A stretch of DNA of 63,973 nucleotides, filler included, from Trichosphaerium sp. ATCC 40318 (GCA_038496445.1; 3 parts of 3 records of this genome joined end to end with filler, not necessarily neighbours in it); one strand, 5' to 3'; counted from the whole stretch's first letter, positions 32,191-49,800 are shown. Notes: a model not told the origin generated them from the letters alone. Program-made: numbers and translations.

Positions 32191-33187
32191 ATGCAACAAG
32201 TACTAATCGCGCTACTACTGCTTTCATGCTATACTAGCTAAAAGCGAGTTTATTGAAGCGTTACCAAGGTACTTATTAATTTAATGTCGTTGCTGACGTG
32301 TGAGACAAAAGGTTAACGTGGTCAAACCACTCTGCGCTTGATCCTACAGCATGGCCATGTTCTATTGATAAAGTAGATAATATTGGAATACAGACATTCC
32401 TAACAACCTACAAAGAAAAGCTACCGGTGATAATAACCGGCTCATCGAATAATTCGCAGTTTGTACAGTCATGTCAAAGAAATAACCTTATTGAGCGCTA
32501 TGGTGACGCTACAGTAAGACTATCAACAGCGAATAGCTATTCGTACGAAAAAAGAGACGAAAAGCTACGTACATACGTAGAAGAGATGATGTTCCCTCAA
32601 AACGTACCAAATGAGTTACAAATACGCTGTTATTAATCAAACAACGTTTAGCTGGACACTCCAGGAGATAAAACGTACTACCACTTTGGTGACAACAACC
32701 ACAAAGAGTTTGAAGACTTGTTCAATGAATACGTCCTACCCAAGTATCTTGATAAGGATAAACCATATGCTATTAGTTTCGGCTTAGCAGGAGATGGTTC
32801 TGGCGTACCTTTTCATTTTCATGGTGCAGTATGGGCCGGTAAGTCGTCATTGACATTTTTTTTTTCAAATTGTTTTTTTACTTCGTTAACGGTTTCACTT
32901 TTAGAGGTAGTTCATGGATACAAGCTTTGGTTGCTTTATCCACCTTCGCCTAAACCTGTTTTTGAACCTAATGAAACAACACTCAAGTGGATACAAACAC
33001 GTTATAGGCACATGTCAGGTGCTGAAAAACCGATAGGTAGAGCTCGTAAATATTTTTAGTTCGTGTCATTCTAAACAAGATTGTAGTTTGTGTGTTGCCA
33101 CCTGGAGAGTTATTGTACATACCCAATGGTTGGTATCATGCTACACTAAACATGGGAGAGTCTGTCTTCATCTCAGTATTTGTTTAA
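32191..33187 (+). CDS. JMJD8: JmjC-domain protein, JMJD8-like
   Basis: YGDATVRLSTANSYSY, YHFGDNN, SFGLAGDGSGVPFHFHG, EVVHGYKLWLLYPP..FEPNETTLKW, PGELLYIPNGWYHATLN. The signal peptide needs a 1-nt correction in the TTT at ~32222. Confidence 0.88.
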
Positions 33188-33583
33188 CCTCAAGAACAGC
33201 AAAAAACAAAAGAAAACAGAGTTTTGTTTACCTTGGCTATACAACACGAGTAATAGAAATTAGCATGGATTGAAACCTGTCACGAACATAGCAAGTACAG
33301 AAAGAATCCACAAACCCGCAAAAACGAATAAATCACACCCAGCAGCTAGAAAGCGAAATAAAAAAAAAAAGACACTCAAAAAAATATCCAAAAAGTTGTT
33401 TGCACGTGATGTCCTGTAGATAATGGTATTCCATTCAGGAAACTAAAACCGTAAATGAGCACATGAGTACTAAAGTGGTGACTGTAAAACTCGAGTATGA
33501 AGAGGGTTCCTTAACGATCTTCAAATGCTCGCTTAGCTGTAAATTGAGTTGCTCAACGCTCGTCGCAATGGATGGCTAAATAA

Positions 33584-35554
33584 ATGAGTAAACGAAAGAC
33601 TACAGGCACTGGTTAGTATAGCACGATTTTGTGTTTTTAACAGCAGATTAATTTTAAACAATACTCTAGGCACTGCCAGACCGCCTAAGAAGCGAAAAAC
33701 GAATGCAAAATTTGATCCAATTGTTCTGTATGATATGTTAAGCGATCGGAACGAGCAGCTCGCTCAATGGACCTCAGACGATAGTTTTCGTTTAGAATAC
33801 AGCAAAAAAGGTACATTAATTAAATTATAACAACGACACGCGCTTTCCTTACGTAAATATCCTCTAAAGCTAACGTTAGTAGTTCCTGGGTCAGCTCCTC
33901 TCTCACAATTGATTGGTGGTGCTAAAAATCTTTCGTACTACGGATTCAGTAAGATAGAAGGACGAGACGACTGGTAACGCCTTTATTTGCTTTACAGAGT
34001 CTTTGTTTTTAACAATTGTAACATAAATTATTTCTAAGTTTGTTAAAAGGTTTCATCTGCTCGTAGAGAAGGACACAGGAAAGCGTGTATTCCGTCAGCA
34101 TAACAGAGATGATATAGGTGCAAAGGTAAACGACATTTTGGAGTTTTCTTTGAAATTTAAAAAATTTTACGCCTAACACTTTTTAAACAAGATACAACGT
34201 GCAGCTATGAAACACTATGAACCTGCTGGGTACGTTTACAATAAATACATTAAGATAAAATGCAATGACTTGTCAAATTACAAAAGTTTTCTTCTAATTT
34301 TTTTTTTGATGATGTTCACGTTTGTTACAATGTATTATTTCTTACTCGATTTTTAGCACTATAATTGAAGAAAAATATAGCGCTTATGATCCGTTACAGT
34401 ATTTATCTATTACACATTCTAGTAATCTTGTCGCTGGGATGCATGTTAACGCAAACGATGGCGATGTTTTAACGCTTCGGATGAAAATAAATAACCTTGA
34501 AGGAGAACTTAATACAGTAAAGGCTAAGCTTGCCAAGAAGGAGAGTGAGGTTGATATTTGGAAAGATCAGTGTTATGCGCTACTTCGCAAAAATAATGAC
34601 ACAAACGGCACACAACAAGTGAGTATACAATCATGATTTGTTTCACAAAAAAATTTTCCTTTTTGTAATTTTTTTTTTTAGAACGGACTTGCAAATACTG
34701 GTGAGTCAATTGCATTACCTGACGCGAAAGTATCCTTAGCCCCTGAAGATAATATATATGAATGCCCTATTTGTTGTGATATGACACATCTTAACGAACT
34801 TCGCGGATTTGGTTGTGGTCATCACTGTACGTTTAAGAAAATCAAAAAAAAATTTTGAAAACTCTCCACGTTTCGAAGAAAAGTAAGGCTCGCTGTTCAG
34901 GGACTGGAGTCTTTTTTGAATTTTTTTAAATTATGCTTACACGTGCTTTTTAATAAATAGGTTGCCGATCGTGCTTGAAGACTTACATTTCAAAACAAAT
35001 CGCAAATCGAGCTATTCCTATTAGATGCCCTTTCCCTTGTGATCACGAAATTCAACAAGGTGAAATCACATGCCATATTGATCCACAACAATATAAACAA
35101 TATATGGCCGCTGTACACGACTCATTGGTTATGCGTAGTGATGACCTAGTGTACGTACAAACAAATCAAAAATTATTACCAAAAGCTTACCATGTTACTA
35201 AACAGGTATTGTCCTACTCCTGATTGTGACCAAGTTGTTCAATGGGATAAAGATCGCAACCCACGACTTCAATGCCAAAAATGTTGCAACACATGGTGCC
35301 TCCTATGCAAAGTACCTTGGCATGATGGTCTCACATGTCAAGAGTATCAAGCTTTCTCGTTTCCTCCACCATTAGATCCAGAACCACTTGATCTTAATAT
35401 CGGTGATGGTGGGTTTGTTACTTGTGCTTGTGGTACTTGGTTGGAGTATACATCTGGCTGTTATGTTGTCACTTGTATTTGTGGTAGAAGAGTTTGTGGC
35501 AAGTGTGGTAAGGTTGTCGAGCCTGGAAACACTTGCTCTCACACCACGTGGTGA
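33584..35554 (+). CDS. HSF-type DNA-binding domain + coiled coil + RBR (RING1-IBR-RING2) E3 ubiquitin ligase
   Basis: NLS-like PPKKRK; LYDMLSD..AQWTSDDSFRL..NLSYYGFSKI..VFRQHNRDDIGAKIQR; coiled coil LRMKINNLEGEL..; CPICC..CGHHCCRSC..IRCPFPC; YCPTPDC..CQKC..WCLLCKVPWHDGLTC; CACGTWLEYTSGCYVVTCICG..CGKC. All splice junctions checked stay in frame. Confidence 0.8.
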
Positions 35555-35760
35555 TTTTCTCGAAAAAAACGGGAATGGATGATGTAAGAGTAATATTCGG
35601 ATATTTGTAAATTTTTTTTAAAATAACTTGTAAAAAGAGAAATAGAAACCAATTGGTTTAAAATTATGACGTGTTTCTGTAAATGCGAAAAAATAGAAAA
35701 GTGCGCTTAATGAATTTTTTGGTTAAGTTGTTTGAAGTTTTTTTGTTTTATTTGTGTACT

Positions 35761-37599
35761 ATGTCTGTGGAAGTGCAGCATAAGATAGTAGTTATTGGAG
35801 CAGGTGTAGTAGGTCTTTCGACAGCAGTTGTTTTGTCGGAATGTTCAAAACTCGACAACAGCACAATACAGATTATTGATAAGGTATTACCACCAGGAAA
35901 CCAAGCTTCTGCTTTATCTTCAGGATTGGTAAGCTAATTGTTTATTTAAACACGCATTCCAACCATATACAGGTATACTACCCAGCGCTATTGAGCGAAA
36001 AACACGGGCGAAGCACAATTGAACGGTTTAAGCAATTATCCACCAACAGCGAAGAAACAGGTACAAGCACATTAAACTAACGGCATTATGTGTTCTAATG
36101 GTAACCATTTTTAGGCGTTGTAATTACACCATCCGTCATTTTGCGCCGAACAGACGAAGGAGGCGTTATAACAAAGCCAGCTGACTTTACTGCTGAAACA
36201 TTAACCAAACTCCAAGAACTCGATCCAAGCTTTCGAAAAGCAACTACAGAGGAGCTCAAAGGTGCGTCACATCGAGGTAAACATTCTAAAGGCATAACAA
36301 GTTCCATAGGAGCACCTAATGGCATGTTTGGACCTCAGCCCGTAATTGCAATGCCAACGTACTTGCAGTATTTAAAAAACAAATTGGATAGTCACAAACG
36401 CGTCAGCTTTGAGCAAGCCAACATATCAAGCCTACAAGAAGTGTTTCAAAAAACAAATGCGTCAGTTATTATAAATGCTGCTGGAATTGGTGCTGGAACA
36501 CTGACAGGAGAATCTGTAACTTCACTAAGTACGTTTGAAGCAAAAAGGGATGATTTTCGGATGTTAATCCCTTTTTAATGATTTTCGGGGTTTTGTTCTT
36601 GCTAGCGATGACGTGTAGTTATACTGGCGAACCGTAAAGCGGTTTTTTGACAAAAACGGCATTAATTTCCCACAATTGATTTCGCTGATTTACCTCTATT
36701 CGCGTTTAACTATTCGCTTAGGTAGCCATATGATGCTTTTAAAGCATACTGGTAAAACACTCGCACGATCGTACTACGACGAAACTAACCCCTCTGGTAA
36801 CACCTACTACTTTCCACGTCAAGATGGGTGCATTTTAGGCAAGTTAATACTAAATTTATTGAAATCGTGATTTATACTGTCGATTCCGAAGGAATAGTCC
36901 AATACACAATTTTATAACGTATTTACGGAGCTTTTTTTCTGTTTTGTTCCAAAAAAAACCGATCGGTTGAAAAGTTTTTTTGCGATGTGCCTTTGTTTAA
37001 CGTCTTTTAAATAGGCGGTACAGACACTACAGCTATTGGTAATAATGTTGATGATACAGTTATAACTAATATACTCGCTCGTGTTGATTTAATGTTACCA
37101 GAGTTGAGCTTAAAAGACGCACAGATAGAACGTACTTGGGTACACATTCGATACCCTTCTTTTCATCAACTTCTAACTTTTTTTTTTTCCTTTCTTATTT
37201 TCTTGTAATTAATCTGTTTAAAGGTTGGTTCACGCCCTATACGTGCTAGTGGTGTTAGATTAGAAGTAGAAGAAACAAATGAAGGACCTGTAGTACACAA
37301 CTATGGCCACGGTACTGATATTTTTCTAAAATACAAAAACCTGTTTTTTTGGGTTTTTTTTTTACAAACAAAAAATTATCATCCCTCAATAAAGTAAACT
37401 AGCAGGCTTGGGCATAACAACATCTTGGACGTCTGCAGAAACAGCTGTAGAGCTTGTTATAAAACGATTGAACTATTTTTCTTCCTTGGAGGATTCAAGC
37501 TTAAAGAGGCCGTTCGAGGGTGCTGGTGATGGTGAAGATGATCAATCACCTAAAAAAAGACGTCGTATACAAAGTACAGACAAGAATGTTGAAGAATGA
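35761..37599 (+). CDS. D-amino-acid oxidase / D-aspartate oxidase family FAD oxidoreductase
   Basis: KIVVIGAGVVGLSTA (Rossmann), MPTYLQYL, IINAAGIGA, TYYFPRQDGCILGGT, VGSRPIRASGVRLE, VVHNYGH.GLGITTSWTSA. Confidence 0.9.
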
Positions 37600-43871: not shown

Positions 43872-46800
43872 TTAGTTTGCACGTTGTTCTTTCTTTGATA
43901 TTTTTTGGTCCCAGTTGGGTATTGTGAACCTTTAAAACTCTTTATCTAATCGCAAACTAGAACACTGCATATTGAAAATAGGGATTTGAAGCAGCAGTCA
44001 ACAATAAAAAAGCGACGACAAGAGAAAACAAACAACACAAATCAAAAGAGAACTTTAACTTGATCCTTCTTTTTTTTTTTTGATTATGCTACAATATAAA
44101 CTTTATTTTACCTCTACCTATGGTACCCTTCCCCAAAAAGTTCTTTGAGGCACGTCTATCACCTGAAGGCTTTTTATAAGAATCCCATGCAGAATTAGTT
44201 CGTTTATGTCTTTTTTGCTTTTGTGGCTGAGGTGATGGTTCAGGTGCAAGTTCAGCTTCTGAAACTGACTCTTCTTCGTCCTCAATATAATCCTCGTTTT
44301 TACGAACTTTTACAATATATACAGGCAATATAAGAGAGTCTACAGAAACAGTAAGTCGCATGTCAAGTGTAGCTTCAAGAAGAAAAAAAGGCGACAAAAA
44401 AATGTATCCCATTTGGGCTTCGTATTTTGTTCTTTAGTCTCGTGGTCACCACGAAGAGTTTTTGTACTGTTTTTGAATTTTGAAAAATGTGACAAGAGCA
44501 AAACAACTCTCATCACATGGATGGAGAGTGAAAGGCGGTTAAGTCAACGTACAATCGAACATCACAATTTCGTTTGGAAGTGATTGTTTTGCCCATTTTG
44601 CTGGAAGTCCTTCTTCATTTACTACAGCATAATGTGATTGGTATCCAGCCTTTACATCAGCGCCAACCAGAGATTGTTTACCCTGTGGATCTTCCACAGC
44701 AGGATATACATTACCTGGAGCAGCATACTAAAAAAACCTGTGTTAGTTTGTCGCTTCATTTCTCAAACTAGCCGTCTTTTATAAAGCTTATAAGCTTTGT
44801 TTAGATAACGTAGTATGTGGGAAGTACGCATAACTAATTTCTTGGTATTTTGTGTAGCTGGTTTGGAAAGAGCAAAAAAAAGAAAAATCTAATTTTTTTT
44901 GGTTGATAGGTGACTTGACGGTCACTTTTGTCAACATGTAGGTTGACAAAGTGAAATAAAGTTACTTACACATATAACCATAGTATTGCAGTCACCTTCT
45001 GGAATATTTCTCTGGGCATAATTGGCAGAGGTAGTCAAGTAAACGCCTTCTCCATATGAACCTAAATAAAAAATTTCAGTATTTTGTATTGATCATCTGG
45101 TACCACCGGAAGAATCAGGTATATCAAATCCCGATTGAGCTATCTCTATAGCCATATCATAAGAGCAACAATGAACAGCAGGAAATATAGGTATATCGTA
45201 TTGACCAATATATTTGTTCCAATCCGTATTTTTTACAAGATTATCATAATTCTCCATTACTTGTTTACGACGTTCAATTATATCTGTTGGTTCTTGTTCA
45301 TTTGTTTTCCAAGTATCTAATTTAAAGAATTTTGGGAAACATCTATGACTTGTTGCCAAGTTTTGTTTCTGGAATTGAAAAAAAAGTAAGAAAAACACGT
45401 GATTTTTTTGTAAAAGTTTGGTTAGGGTGTTGTACCGCTTGTTCAAACTCTTTTAGTAAGTGTTCGTTATAAATTGCCTCAGCAGATACTATTTCTAAAC
45501 CTCTACCGCCCATGTTCTTTAGGAGACCATTTAACCTCTTGAGTTCGTAAGGTTGTTGAACCTTTATGTCCAAGTCAGTTTTTTTTGGTTCACGATGAGT
45601 AGTATGTTTTTATTTGTACCTCTTCGTCTCTTTTCACGTGACAAGTTTTATACTCATTAGTAGAATGGCCAACAACCCTCCATAGTCCATATGTGAGGAA
45701 GTTATCTGAGAATTTCCTAAATGACGTATTTGATTAGGAACTTAACTAGTTTTAGTTCAGTTTCGTTCTCGCACCATGGGAACAGTGAACTTCCTAGAGA
45801 CCACCATGGAGAACCCTTTTTAGGCTCACACTTTGCTTGTAGGGTTGTAACATATCTGGCATAATCTAAAAGGAAGAATAAGCTTTCAAAGCGAGGTAAC
45901 GTTGATGCTTTTAAACAGTACGTACTTGCTTTGAGTTTGGTTGTCTTTTCAAGTATTTTTTTATGTTCGTGTTCAGGAACAAGCATTCTCTCCAAGTCCT
46001 CTTTGCGTAGATCAAGAAATTGCAAACCGCTAATACCATTAGACAAGCCAACATCAAAAAAAAAGCTCAAGCACGTGCTGCGCATGCATTGTTTTTCGGA
46101 AAAACTGGAAAAACTTTATATCCAAAAATCTGTGAATAAATGTTTTTTCATCGTACGTAATATTGTTGCTTTGAAAAATCTTTGCAGCATTAGGAGATAT
46201 TGGTGAAACAACGCTAAAAACATCTTTAACACGCATAAAAGGAGGAGCAAGCTTCTTCCTCTTAATCTTCTTAACAGCAACTTCAACTTCAAGCTCAATA
46301 CCTCTGAACGTCTTAAGAACGCCCTTACCAACATCACGTTCCCATGAAGCATATACAGTACCCAATTTAGGTAAGTAAAGAGCACCAAAACCGTGTTGAA
46401 GGTTTGAAGCCCATTGACCTGAATACTTGATGCCATCGGAGTATTCAAAGAATCCTTGACCATGTTTGAGATCTTTAACCCATTCTCCAACATATCTAGC
46501 ACCGACTAGAAGCGTCATTGTACCATATCCATGCTTTTTATCTTGTTTCCATTTACCAACATATGTACAACCATTTGCTACTTTCAGTGTACCCTCTCCT
46601 TCACGCTTACCCATGACATAATCTCCTTTATACTCAGCGCCGTCAGGCCAAGTGAAGAGACCTTTACCATTGTACTTTCCTTGATTCCATTGTCCAGTAT
46701 ACACAGACCCATCGGCGAAACAGAATGTTCCCAAGCCGTGCCTTTTATCATGTTGGTACTGACCAACATACGAAGCACCTCTACTTCCAGTATAAGATCC

Positions 46801-49800
46801 TTCTCCATGTCGTTTACCATCAAGCCATTCTCCCAAGTAGGTTCCTCTTTGAGCGTACGCCGCTGTACCTACGCCATTAGGTTTACCATTCTTTATCTGA
46901 CCTTTGTATACCCACCACCGGTACTTGATCGTTCCGCCTCTGTTTTAAAAAATCACGTGTAAGTTCACGTGATTAAATAGGAAAAATGTACTTACGTTGC
47001 GCCTTGGAATTTCCAAACTCGTTTTGATTTTCGAAGTCTTTCTTTTTGTGCTATAACTAGTCTTGATGACTTCTGAAGTACATTCTTCTTTTTCTTTATT
47101 GTAGATGCTCTTGTCATTGTCTTTGTTATTCTGTTGTTAACGCGGCGTTCCATTGAAAGTCTATAGACCTCTCTTTGAGCCTTAAACACTGGTGAGAAGG
47201 AGAATTACTACAAACCAAATGCTTTGGCTTGTTTTCTACTAGTTGTTACCTTTACTTCATCTACCTTGCTCTTCTTCTCTTCACCCTCAGGTCTAGGTAC
47301 AGCTGCGCTTTCAAATCGTTTTCTTTCCTGTTCTTCTTGAGCCTGACGTGTTTGTTAAAAAAACAATCAAAATTTTTTAAACGAAAATGTTGTGCCTTGC
47401 GAGCTTGTTCTTTTTGTCTTTCTTGTTCTTCTCTTTCTTTTTGTTCTTGTTCTCTCCGCCGTCTCTCTTCTTCTACTCTCGCTTTTTCAGCTTCTGCCCG
47501 TTGTTTTTCTTTGGCTTTTCTTCGTTGACGCTCAGCTTCCTCTCTTCGTTGTTTCTCTTCTAGTTCTCGCTTTCTAAGAATATCTTGCCTTCGTTTTTCT
47601 TGCCTTTCCTGAAGATACATTAACGTCGGTTAAACTGTGGTTGAAATAGTACCTGAACTAGATATTCACATAACCTAACGGCAACGTATCTTCTACATAG
47701 ACTCTGAAGATATACAGAAGCGTGGTGTCGAGCAACGGCCGATTTTACTCTTTTTCTACATAGAAAACCTCTCACAACTTTTTGGATCTTGATGGCATAT
47801 GGCTCCATGCACTCTGCACGAAGCTCTTCAAGTACTTCCAGCTGTTGAGTAAAAATTAGTACATAAAGAATATTTACTTAGAGTGTTGATAGTACCGCTT
47901 CATGGCGAAGAAAAGCCTTTGTTTTACCAATCTGACAATCCTTTTTTTTCAAACCAGCAGCTTTCATTATCTTTCTGCAAGTCCTCTTTATATCCCTAGA
48001 TTTACGACTTGCAACAATACCAAACCTTTGGTAAAAGATTTAGTACGAAATACGAAAATTAGAATAATACCTGTGCGTGAAGACATCGAAATCCAAACGT
48101 ATTGGATATCCTGATTGTCTTATTTTTATTGTTTCTAAAACACCAGAACAACTTAGTTGCTCAAGCACTTGTCCACCATGAAAAACATTTGGTGCTCTGT
48201 AACGATTAGGTTTAATACACCTACGAGTATATTTAGATCACATTCTTTCACGTCAGCGAAAATTACCTGATCCAATGAGGATCTGTCTCATTAACAGTTT
48301 CCATCAAATCATCGAGTTGAAACTAGAAACAAACATTAAACAAAGAAGATATTGTCAAATATCTAAGTACCTTAAACTGTGTTCCTACTGTAATTGGTTT
48401 GCCACGTATGACTTCAGCGGTCTTTATAAGGTTTTTAATATACGGATCAGTGCTATGTCTTGTCATGGTGACAATGTCTGGCTTTAAGGCGTCTTTGTTT
48501 TTATCCAAAAAGCCTTTTGCACTGTACATTACCTTAAAAGCCAGTTAAGATAACAGAGGTTTCTGTTGGTTGAAGTTGGTACGTACACGTTCAGCATAGT
48601 GAGATATTCCAAAGTTACCATTAGATATCTTTGGAGAAAGGAAAGAGTCATGAGATTCATGTTGACCTTTAATCTTATTCAAAAAAGAAGTATCTGTTCC
48701 TTTTGGAAAAGTGCACTCCTCGTTAAGTAGTTCTAGTACACTTGCATGCTAACGTGAACAGTAAGTAATGAAGACAAAAGAGGTTCTATTATGGTTTTCA
48801 TAAAACGTACACCATGAGCAATGAGATCAAGTGTTTTTTGGTTGTCATCAAAGGGAATTGCTTGAAAATTTATGCCTTCTTTTTGACATGCTTCAAGTTC
48901 CCATTTGAAGTTATGTCGATTGTAATGTTGCTGGAAGGTCTCATTCGCGAAATTAATACAAAATTGCTCAAAACTGTTGGCCTAAAGAAGAAATCTTAGA
49001 GTCAGACATGGTCACGTCAACACAAAAAAAAAGTTGGTTGATGCAACTTACCTTGAAATTCTCGAAACCAAAAATATCCAAGAGCCCAATAAATAACTGA
49101 CTATTTGTATTATTTATAGTGTTATTAATCTTTACTACTATCCAGTCGAATAAATTACTGTACAAAGCTTTTGAAAGGACATCTCTGACATCAACAGCCT
49201 AAAACACAAGTTTAATTTTAAATCAGATTTCATTCTTTTGAAGTACTTGTGAGGCCGAGTACGGCACTATATACACTTCTTTTGCTATAACATTACGTCT
49301 TGTGAGCAAAATAGATTGAAGCTCTGTTGGATCTACACATAGTAGCTTCGCAACAATAAATACAATCTCAGGATTTTCTACTTGAGCCTAAACCAAAACT
49401 TGTAAAGTGTTGTTTCCAACGTATTTTTTTCGTACTTCCTCCTTCTCTGAAGAACCGATATTTAGATTACCCAGATGAAGGATAGCGGATAATACCCTGA
49501 AAATAAAATCCCTCTCCTCTTTTCCAATATTAATACGAGCCATAGCAGAGATGACTTGTTTCAGTTCTTTCTATTCGAGAAAAAAAAAATGAGCAAAAAA
49601 AGTCACGTGATTTAAGGACAAAGTACTTCTTCATTGCGTCCTTGAATCATCACACATCCACTACCGTTAAGGTACCGATAGTCTCCGACTCTTTTAAGGT
49701 TATATCGCATCCTTTGCTGCACGTAAGACAAAAGAATAAAGAAAAAAAAGATCTACTCACTTAAATTCAGCATCAGTTGAAGCCAACATCATATAAAAAA

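Follow-up and report, generated by a model that had tools for sequence, protein, structure and literature searches.

The window analysed here, a stretch of 63,973 nucleotides (filler included) from Trichosphaerium sp. ATCC 40318, contains on its + strand a nine-exon gene that runs from an ATG at 33584 to a stop codon ending at 35554 and is interrupted by eight GT-AG introns of 55-134 nt. The spliced ORF (1320 nt with the stop codon) encodes a product of 439 aa in which basic clusters, a region resembling the DNA-binding domain of heat-shock factors (HSF), a coiled coil and a RING1-IBR-RING2 (RBR) ubiquitin-ligase module follow one another. The features, all on the + strand, are as follows.

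33469..35663, +, primary transcript (mRNA span); cDNA 5' end at 33469, poly(A) site near 35663
33469..33583, +, 5' UTR, containing four very short uORFs, each with its own upstream ATG (sequence reading)
33584..33611, +, exon 1 (coding part), residues 1-9, with the first basic cluster KRK (contigs)
33670..33810, +, exon 2, with the NLS PPKKRKT (33681-33701) and the beginning of the HSF-like region (helix 1, W43, SF48)
33883..33973, +, exon 3, with putative helix 2, turn and recognition helix GGAKNLSYYGFSK (contigs, alignment)
34050..34125, +, exon 4, with a putative beta-hairpin wing
34192..34229, +, exon 5, in which the HSF-like region ends (~residue 117, 34206) and a linker begins
34357..34618, +, exon 6, linker and coiled coil (residues 162-203, 34466-34591; heptad count, weak Pfam)
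34619..34681, +, intron 6, 63 nt, phase 0, GTGAGT..TTTTAG (joint 34618/34682 in X1, X3 and X4)
34682..34826, +, exon 7, linker and the half of RING1 before intron 7
34763-35040, +, RING1 (residues 240-287), split by intron 7
34961..35150, +, exon 8, the half of RING1 after intron 7, then the beginning of the IBR
35098-35338, +, IBR (residues 307-368; Pfam)
35206..35554, +, exon 9, remaining IBR, Pro-rich linker, RING2/Rcat and stop codon
35417-35542, +, RING2/Rcat (residues 395-436)
35459-35461, +, codon of the predicted catalytic Cys409

Transcript structure and strain variation

Public cDNA-like contigs (assembled contigs, not raw reads; X1 to X4 here) were aligned to positions 33000-36200. 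Unbroken contigs from three studies span all eight introns: X1 contig 1 (1392 nt) and X3 contig 10 (1443 nt) each have all eight introns spliced out within them, and the X4 and X2 contigs confirm subsets of the exon joints. Two JGI cDNA contigs, L001 and L002, which carry both 5' and 3' UTRs, align colinearly with the spliced CDS of the window, with seven substitutions and no indels, and encode the database protein P0001. This protein, recovered when the last exon was the query of an exhaustive HMMER search (100% identity over that exon), is identical to the spliced product at every one of its 439 residues. Thus, the HSF-like and RBR halves are encoded by one mRNA, as the original prediction had proposed, and not by separate transcripts. 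The neighbouring genes on both sides are represented by contigs of their own.

The intron between the two halves had been placed at 34620-34681. Consistent with that placement, it is in phase 0, is spliced out and leaves the halves in frame, but its real start lies one base earlier, giving an intron of 63 nt (34619-34681). Because intron 6 contains an in-frame TGA, its splicing is required. The acceptor of intron 2 is of the NAGNAG type (TAGTAG, 33877-33882), and all cDNA contigs skip 72 nt and not 69, which means that the distal AG is used and the product has 439 aa and not 440; use of the proximal AG would insert one Val. A GT..AT form of intron 8, which arose from an aligner placement with one mismatch, was rejected because cDNA colinearity gives GT-AG borders at 35151-35205.

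The loose 5' end of X3 contig 10 is recognisable as the 3' part of the SMART template-switch oligo, and because this oligo abuts 33469 the cDNA 5' end was assigned to that position. At the other end, a poly(A) run terminates L001 after GGTTT, near 35663. The resulting 5' UTR of 115 nt holds four uORFs of 3-5 codons each (33497-33514, 33525-33536, 33568-33579 and 33572-33583), the fourth of which stops immediately before the main ATG; judging from this arrangement, translational control through the uORFs is possible.

Between the window and other strains or runs, the CDS differs at 10 distinct positions, and all 10 differences are synonymous, including one in the codon of Leu73 within the putative recognition helix. 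Synonymous-only variation of this kind argues for purifying selection across the whole ORF. Near-identical spliced copies (at least 99%) were present in runs from at least three studies, X1 and X4 representing one common haplotype and X3 matching the window; the 3' UTR of L002 has a one-base indel compared with L001 and the window.

The RING1-IBR-RING2 module

As predicted, the C-terminal half carries the RBR order of domains. Pfam identified the IBR at residues 307-368 with an E value of 3.5e-14 and 53 bits against a cut-off of 24.3, and the last exon alone gave E 3.4e-14 in two stretches, corresponding to the IBR proper and RING2. In an alignment of 110 rows, which included 109 of the best-scoring relatives, the zinc ligands could be followed through all three domains: columns C240, C243, C257, C265 and C283 of RING1, C326, C331, C347, C350, C355, H363 and C368 of the IBR, and C397, C399, C414, C416, C421 and C424 of RING2 are invariant or nearly so. 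Upstream of the IBR, a C3HC4 set of RING1 ligands can be read from the sequence (C240, C243, C257, H259, C262, C265, C283 and C287), five of which lie in columns at least 90% conserved in the 110-row alignment; the Pfam match of RING1 to zf-RING_2 is weak (E 0.03). All RING2 ligands are present (C397, C399, C414, C416, C421, C424, C434 and H436), and the catalytic pair G408-C409 falls in columns with Gly in 106 and Cys in 104 of the 110 rows. Taken together, the C-terminal half is certainly a complete RING1-IBR-RING2 module with Cys409 as the catalytic residue.

The original prediction had also drawn attention to RING2, in which the catalytic Cys is kept (GCYVVTC) and Val411 stands at the position of the usual active-site His. 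Both observations hold, but the loss is not unusual, as His occupies this position in 72 of the 110 rows and is absent from the other 38. According to a review (PMC7458406), RBRs do not all conserve the Cys-His-Glu/Gln triad, and RNF216 has activity although it lacks the His. Because so many rows do without the His, and RNF216 is active without it, the missing His is a weak argument against activity. Two further features of this region are a first RING2 ligand pair of the form CxC, compared with the CPxC consensus of the relatives, and a short, Pro-rich linker between IBR and RING2.

When the alignment profile was compared with the PDB, it matched ARIH2, ARIH1, HOIL-1, CUL9, RNF216, HOIP and parkin (E 1e-43 to 1e-24); the last exon searched by phmmer against PDB sequences gave no RBR match at E 0.01. 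Relative to the Ariadne-type RBRs (ARIH1/HHARI and ARIH2), HOIL-1, RNF216, HOIP and parkin, the protein has the same RING1-IBR-RING2 order, the same zinc ligands and the same Cys in the GC motif of RING2, and with RNF216 it shares the missing active-site His (Val here). It differs from these RBRs in the CxC form of the first RING2 ligand pair and in having none of the Ariadne, UBA-like, RWD, Ubl and NZF accessory domains; instead, it carries an NLS, an HSF-like head and a coiled coil. RBR ligases work as RING/HECT hybrids, in which the RING2 Cys accepts ubiquitin from E2~Ub before handing it on to the substrate (PMC7458406), and by analogy the same mechanism is expected for this protein.

The N-terminal half

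The NLS of the original prediction corresponds to two basic clusters, KRK (residues 3-5) and PPKKRKT (residues 14-20). Such basic clusters follow the classical rule for an NLS, and here they make up a classical, SV40-like signal, possibly of the bipartite kind. The coiled coil that had been placed after the head is likewise found: a heptad register runs over residues ~162-203 with hydrophobic residues at 9 of the 10 a/d positions, and the segment gives weak matches to coiled-coil families in Pfam. By its register, this segment of ~40 residues is a heptad coiled coil between the HSF-like head and the RBR module.

Between the basic clusters and the coiled coil, all of the HSF-like motifs listed in the original prediction are present (LYDMLSD, W43..SF48, LSYYGFSK and, distally, I..IQR). 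With residues 1-130 and 20-125 as queries, HSF_DNA-bind was the sole family reported by Pfam (E 0.13 and 0.068, respectively; 13.2-14.1 bits), a match that falls below the Pfam gathering score of 22 bits; with the shorter query, residues 29-92 were aligned with profile positions 5-70 of 100. Translations of the single N-terminal exons, which are too short to count, were unmatched. We regard the HSF-type head as a plausible prediction: it has a single candidate family and, as described below, an alignment score above all controls, but a sub-threshold Pfam score and no independent structural match.

For comparison, an independent set of 49 uninterrupted HSF domains was fetched from metagenome contigs by the recognition-helix motif, and all 49 were HSF_DNA-bind by Pfam (best E 7e-36). 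When residues 18-128, as a single-sequence query profile, were aligned with these domains by hhalign, the probability was 85.7% and P was 5.5e-6 over 56 columns, a span that begins with helix 1 and takes in the whole recognition helix. A local rerun gave a score of 34.3, compared with a maximum of 21.7 (mean 11.4, sd 2.5) for 150 composition-preserving shuffles, 12.0 for the reversed sequence and a maximum of 21.3 for 520 windows of 111 residues cut from unrelated regions of other real proteins. Similarly, a local HSF HMM scored the N-terminus at 11.2 bits, matching it in two colinear pieces; this score was higher than those of all 5000 shuffles (best 8.5) and of all 149 other listed proteins. 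Corrected for ~25,000 families, a pairwise P of ~5e-6 corresponds to the Pfam E of ~0.07, and the HSF sequence match taken alone is only suggestive.

Relative to the HSF family (HSF1-5, Skn7 and the plant and protist HSFs; PF00447), the protein has the same order of parts, with an N-terminal DNA-binding-like domain followed by a heptad region. The residues kept are the Trp of strand 1 (Trp43), the SF of strand 2 (Ser47-Phe48) and the L-x-x-YGF-x-K pattern of the recognition helix (Leu73, Tyr76-Gly77-Phe78 and Lys80), including the Lys after YGF. Compared with the HSF pattern SFVRQLNxYGF(R/H)K, the putative recognition helix GGAKNLSYYGFSK retains the L, the YGF and the final K, whereas Arg is replaced by Lys, Gln by Asn and SF by GG. 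The helix 2 region (KKVPGSAPLSQLI) is without the conserved LPxYFKHxNF of HSFs, and neither helix 2 nor its KHxNF turn is conserved. Because the HSF Arg is a Lys here and the turn between helices 2 and 3 differs, specificity for nGAAn is not to be assumed. Further differences from HSFs lie outside the head. The coiled coil covers ~40 residues and follows a linker of 45 residues, whereas the HR-A/B of HSFs is longer than that, and the C-terminus consists of the E3 module, with no recognisable HR-C or activation domain.

A phmmer search of PDB sequences with residues 1-135 returned noise only and no HSF, and language-model feature (Atlas) searches with residues 20-125 and 1-215 returned no HSF cluster and no usable match; the whole protein retrieved RBR clusters only, all below 0.85. 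The AlphaFold2 model of the N-terminus as a single sequence was uninterpretable (pLDDT 44.7). With an HSF alignment supplied, which by construction biases the model towards the HSF fold, the pLDDT was only 52.8, and the HSF order of elements (helix 1, strands 1-2, helix 2, helix 3, strands 3-4) was followed only up to residue ~93. Foldseek matched this HSF-biased model to HSF/Skn7 DNA-binding domains with E 0.02-0.1 and TM 0.4-0.5, and ETS domains came just behind.

The NLS before the head and the coiled coil after it, an arrangement that is also that of HSFs, lend some added weight to the HSF reading, and we consider that the N-terminal domain is probably a winged helix of HSF/ETS type. We infer that residues ~24-117 make up this fold in a highly diverged form, in which helix 1, the beta hairpin and the recognition helix (AKNLSYYGFSK) would be recognisable and helix 2 would be degenerate. 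The protein should not be filed as a member of the HSF family.

The relatives of the protein are found through its RBR half. Over the last exon, the best non-self protein shares 37% identity (E 2e-16), and only 35 proteins reach E 1e-10. Among the 149 other RBR relatives listed, phmmer and a regular-expression scan detected none with the N-terminal domain. For the 109 nearest RBR relatives, 25 of the 34 Pfam families were listed; SAM, FHA, CCCH, CSD, UBA-like, kinase and RVT_3 are among these 25, and HSF_DNA-bind is not. A word-index protein search with residues 1-130, set to the length range of the full protein, and with residues 18-128 alone returned only the protein itself or no match, and a degenerate-pattern scan of metagenome contigs for the N-terminus gave 247 pattern matches and no relatives. 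Overall, from these comparisons, the gene appears to be confined to one lineage. A full-text literature search for the HSF-RBR domain combination found no paper. In agreement with the original prediction, to whose author this architecture was not known, the combination is not described for either the HSF or the RBR family.

A putative nuclear, DNA-tethered RBR ligase

RBR ligases usually reach their substrates through protein- or ubiquitin-binding accessory domains. On balance, we favour the reading that the locus is a single expressed gene for a nuclear RBR-type E3 ligase, whose diverged head of HSF/ETS type would tether it to DNA or chromatin. In such a ligase, the NLS would direct import of the protein into the nucleus, the coiled coil would oligomerise it, and the oligomerised winged-helix heads would tether it to DNA or chromatin. 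The next steps would be recruitment of E2~Ub by RING1, transfer of ubiquitin to Cys409 as a thioester and its delivery from there to lysines, either in chromatin or transcription proteins close by or in the ligase. It may also be, speculatively, that the non-catalytic part keeps the module autoinhibited until it is bound, in line with other RBRs. Going further, the protein could be a hybrid of transcription factor and ubiquitin ligase, a coiled-coil oligomer in which a head derived from HSF reads specific DNA sites and the RBR module, brought there with it, ubiquitinates chromatin or transcription proteins locally; we put this stronger form forward tentatively.

Three other explanations were weighed against a DNA-tethered ligase. 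It is very improbable that the fusion is an artefact in which a wrong gene model or a chimeric assembly has combined two adjacent genes. The evidence does consist of contigs and not raw reads, and a contig that extends over two genes is alone no proof of one transcript. However, the 1320-nt ORF is unbroken, contigs from three studies as well as both JGI cDNA contigs show its eight junctions spliced exactly, the genes on either side assemble on their own, intron 6 has an in-frame stop, and no ATG-initiated alternative is needed. We also regard as improbable a protein that acts mainly as a transcription factor or chromatin protein and whose RBR half, with little or no ligase activity, serves as a zinc scaffold or binds ubiquitin or E2. 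Val411 in place of the triad His, CxC instead of CPxC in the first RING2 pair, the short and Pro-rich linker before RING2 and the failure of the last exon to match a PDB RBR by phmmer at E 0.01 would all fit a module of reduced activity. Against this reading, Cys409 and every zinc ligand are kept, the His is also missing from more than a third of the aligned rows (38 of 110), RNF216 is active without it (PMC7458406), and the synonymous-only variation continues through the RBR exons.

The remaining explanation accepts a real RBR ligase but takes its N-terminal ~120 residues for a lineage-specific region that binds substrates or partners or is autoinhibitory, is unrelated to HSF and resembles it by chance. 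We hold this to be unlikely, although it retains appreciable weight. The sub-threshold Pfam match, with an E value of 0.07, is of a kind that about 1 random query in 15 would give; AlphaFold2 remained unconfident even when HSF sequences were supplied; neither the PDB nor Atlas offered support; and the domain is an orphan in a group of RBR proteins whose N-termini are highly varied among the nearest relatives (SAM, FHA, CCCH, CSD, kinase). On the other hand, a chance match would have had to hit a nuclear DNA-binding family that fits both the NLS and the coiled coil, and the observed match is colinear across helix 1, the hairpin and the recognition helix, with an hhalign score 13 units above the best of 670 controls. 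We therefore retain the reading of a nuclear ligase with a diverged winged-helix head.

A ligase of this design would not be the only RBR with a link to nucleic acids. One study (PMC2904391) describes the plant and protist Helicase and Plant II subfamilies, in which an RBR is combined with a nucleic-acid-related module. These subfamilies and the CCCH, cold-shock and RVT_3 relatives have in common with the present protein an RBR joined to a nucleic-acid-binding or nucleic-acid-associated module. Their modules are helicase, RNase H-like, CCCH and CSD domains, mostly for RNA or single strands, and none of these proteins has a winged-helix transcription-factor domain or N-terminal sequence similarity to the protein studied here. 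The general theme is thus already known, and it is the specific head that would be new. If the favoured reading is true, a DNA-tethered RBR would be a simple natural case of site-directed ubiquitination on chromatin, and the HSF fold would have gained a new use beyond transcription factors. For the time being the impact is limited, because the gene appears confined to one lineage, the next RBR being 37% identical and headless, and because the sequence evidence for the DNA-binding identity of the head is sub-threshold.

Several minor observations concern the surroundings of the gene. An HSE-like triple pentamer, TTCcaTTCagGAA, at 33429-33441, precedes the mapped cDNA 5' end by 28-40 bp. Across the window the HSE-like pattern is present three times where 0.48 would be expected, and a count of three is also reached in 2 of 100 shuffles; the run could be due to chance or, should the head bind GAA repeats, could be a hint of autoregulation. 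Further upstream, a + strand gene (33000-33283) ends near 33283 and has a spliced intron of 50 nt (33034-33083); the pieces of its ORF that were tried against Pfam gave no match. Downstream, another + strand gene starts ~90 bp past the poly(A) site (35751-36200 and beyond); its introns at 35928-35971 and 36059-36112 are spliced out in contigs, and its N-terminus matches Pfam DAO (FAD-dependent oxidoreductase) with E 8e-7. Elsewhere in the window, on the - strand at 46057-46836, a 260-aa ORF consists of MORN repeats, which Pfam matched in five stretches with E 5e-38.
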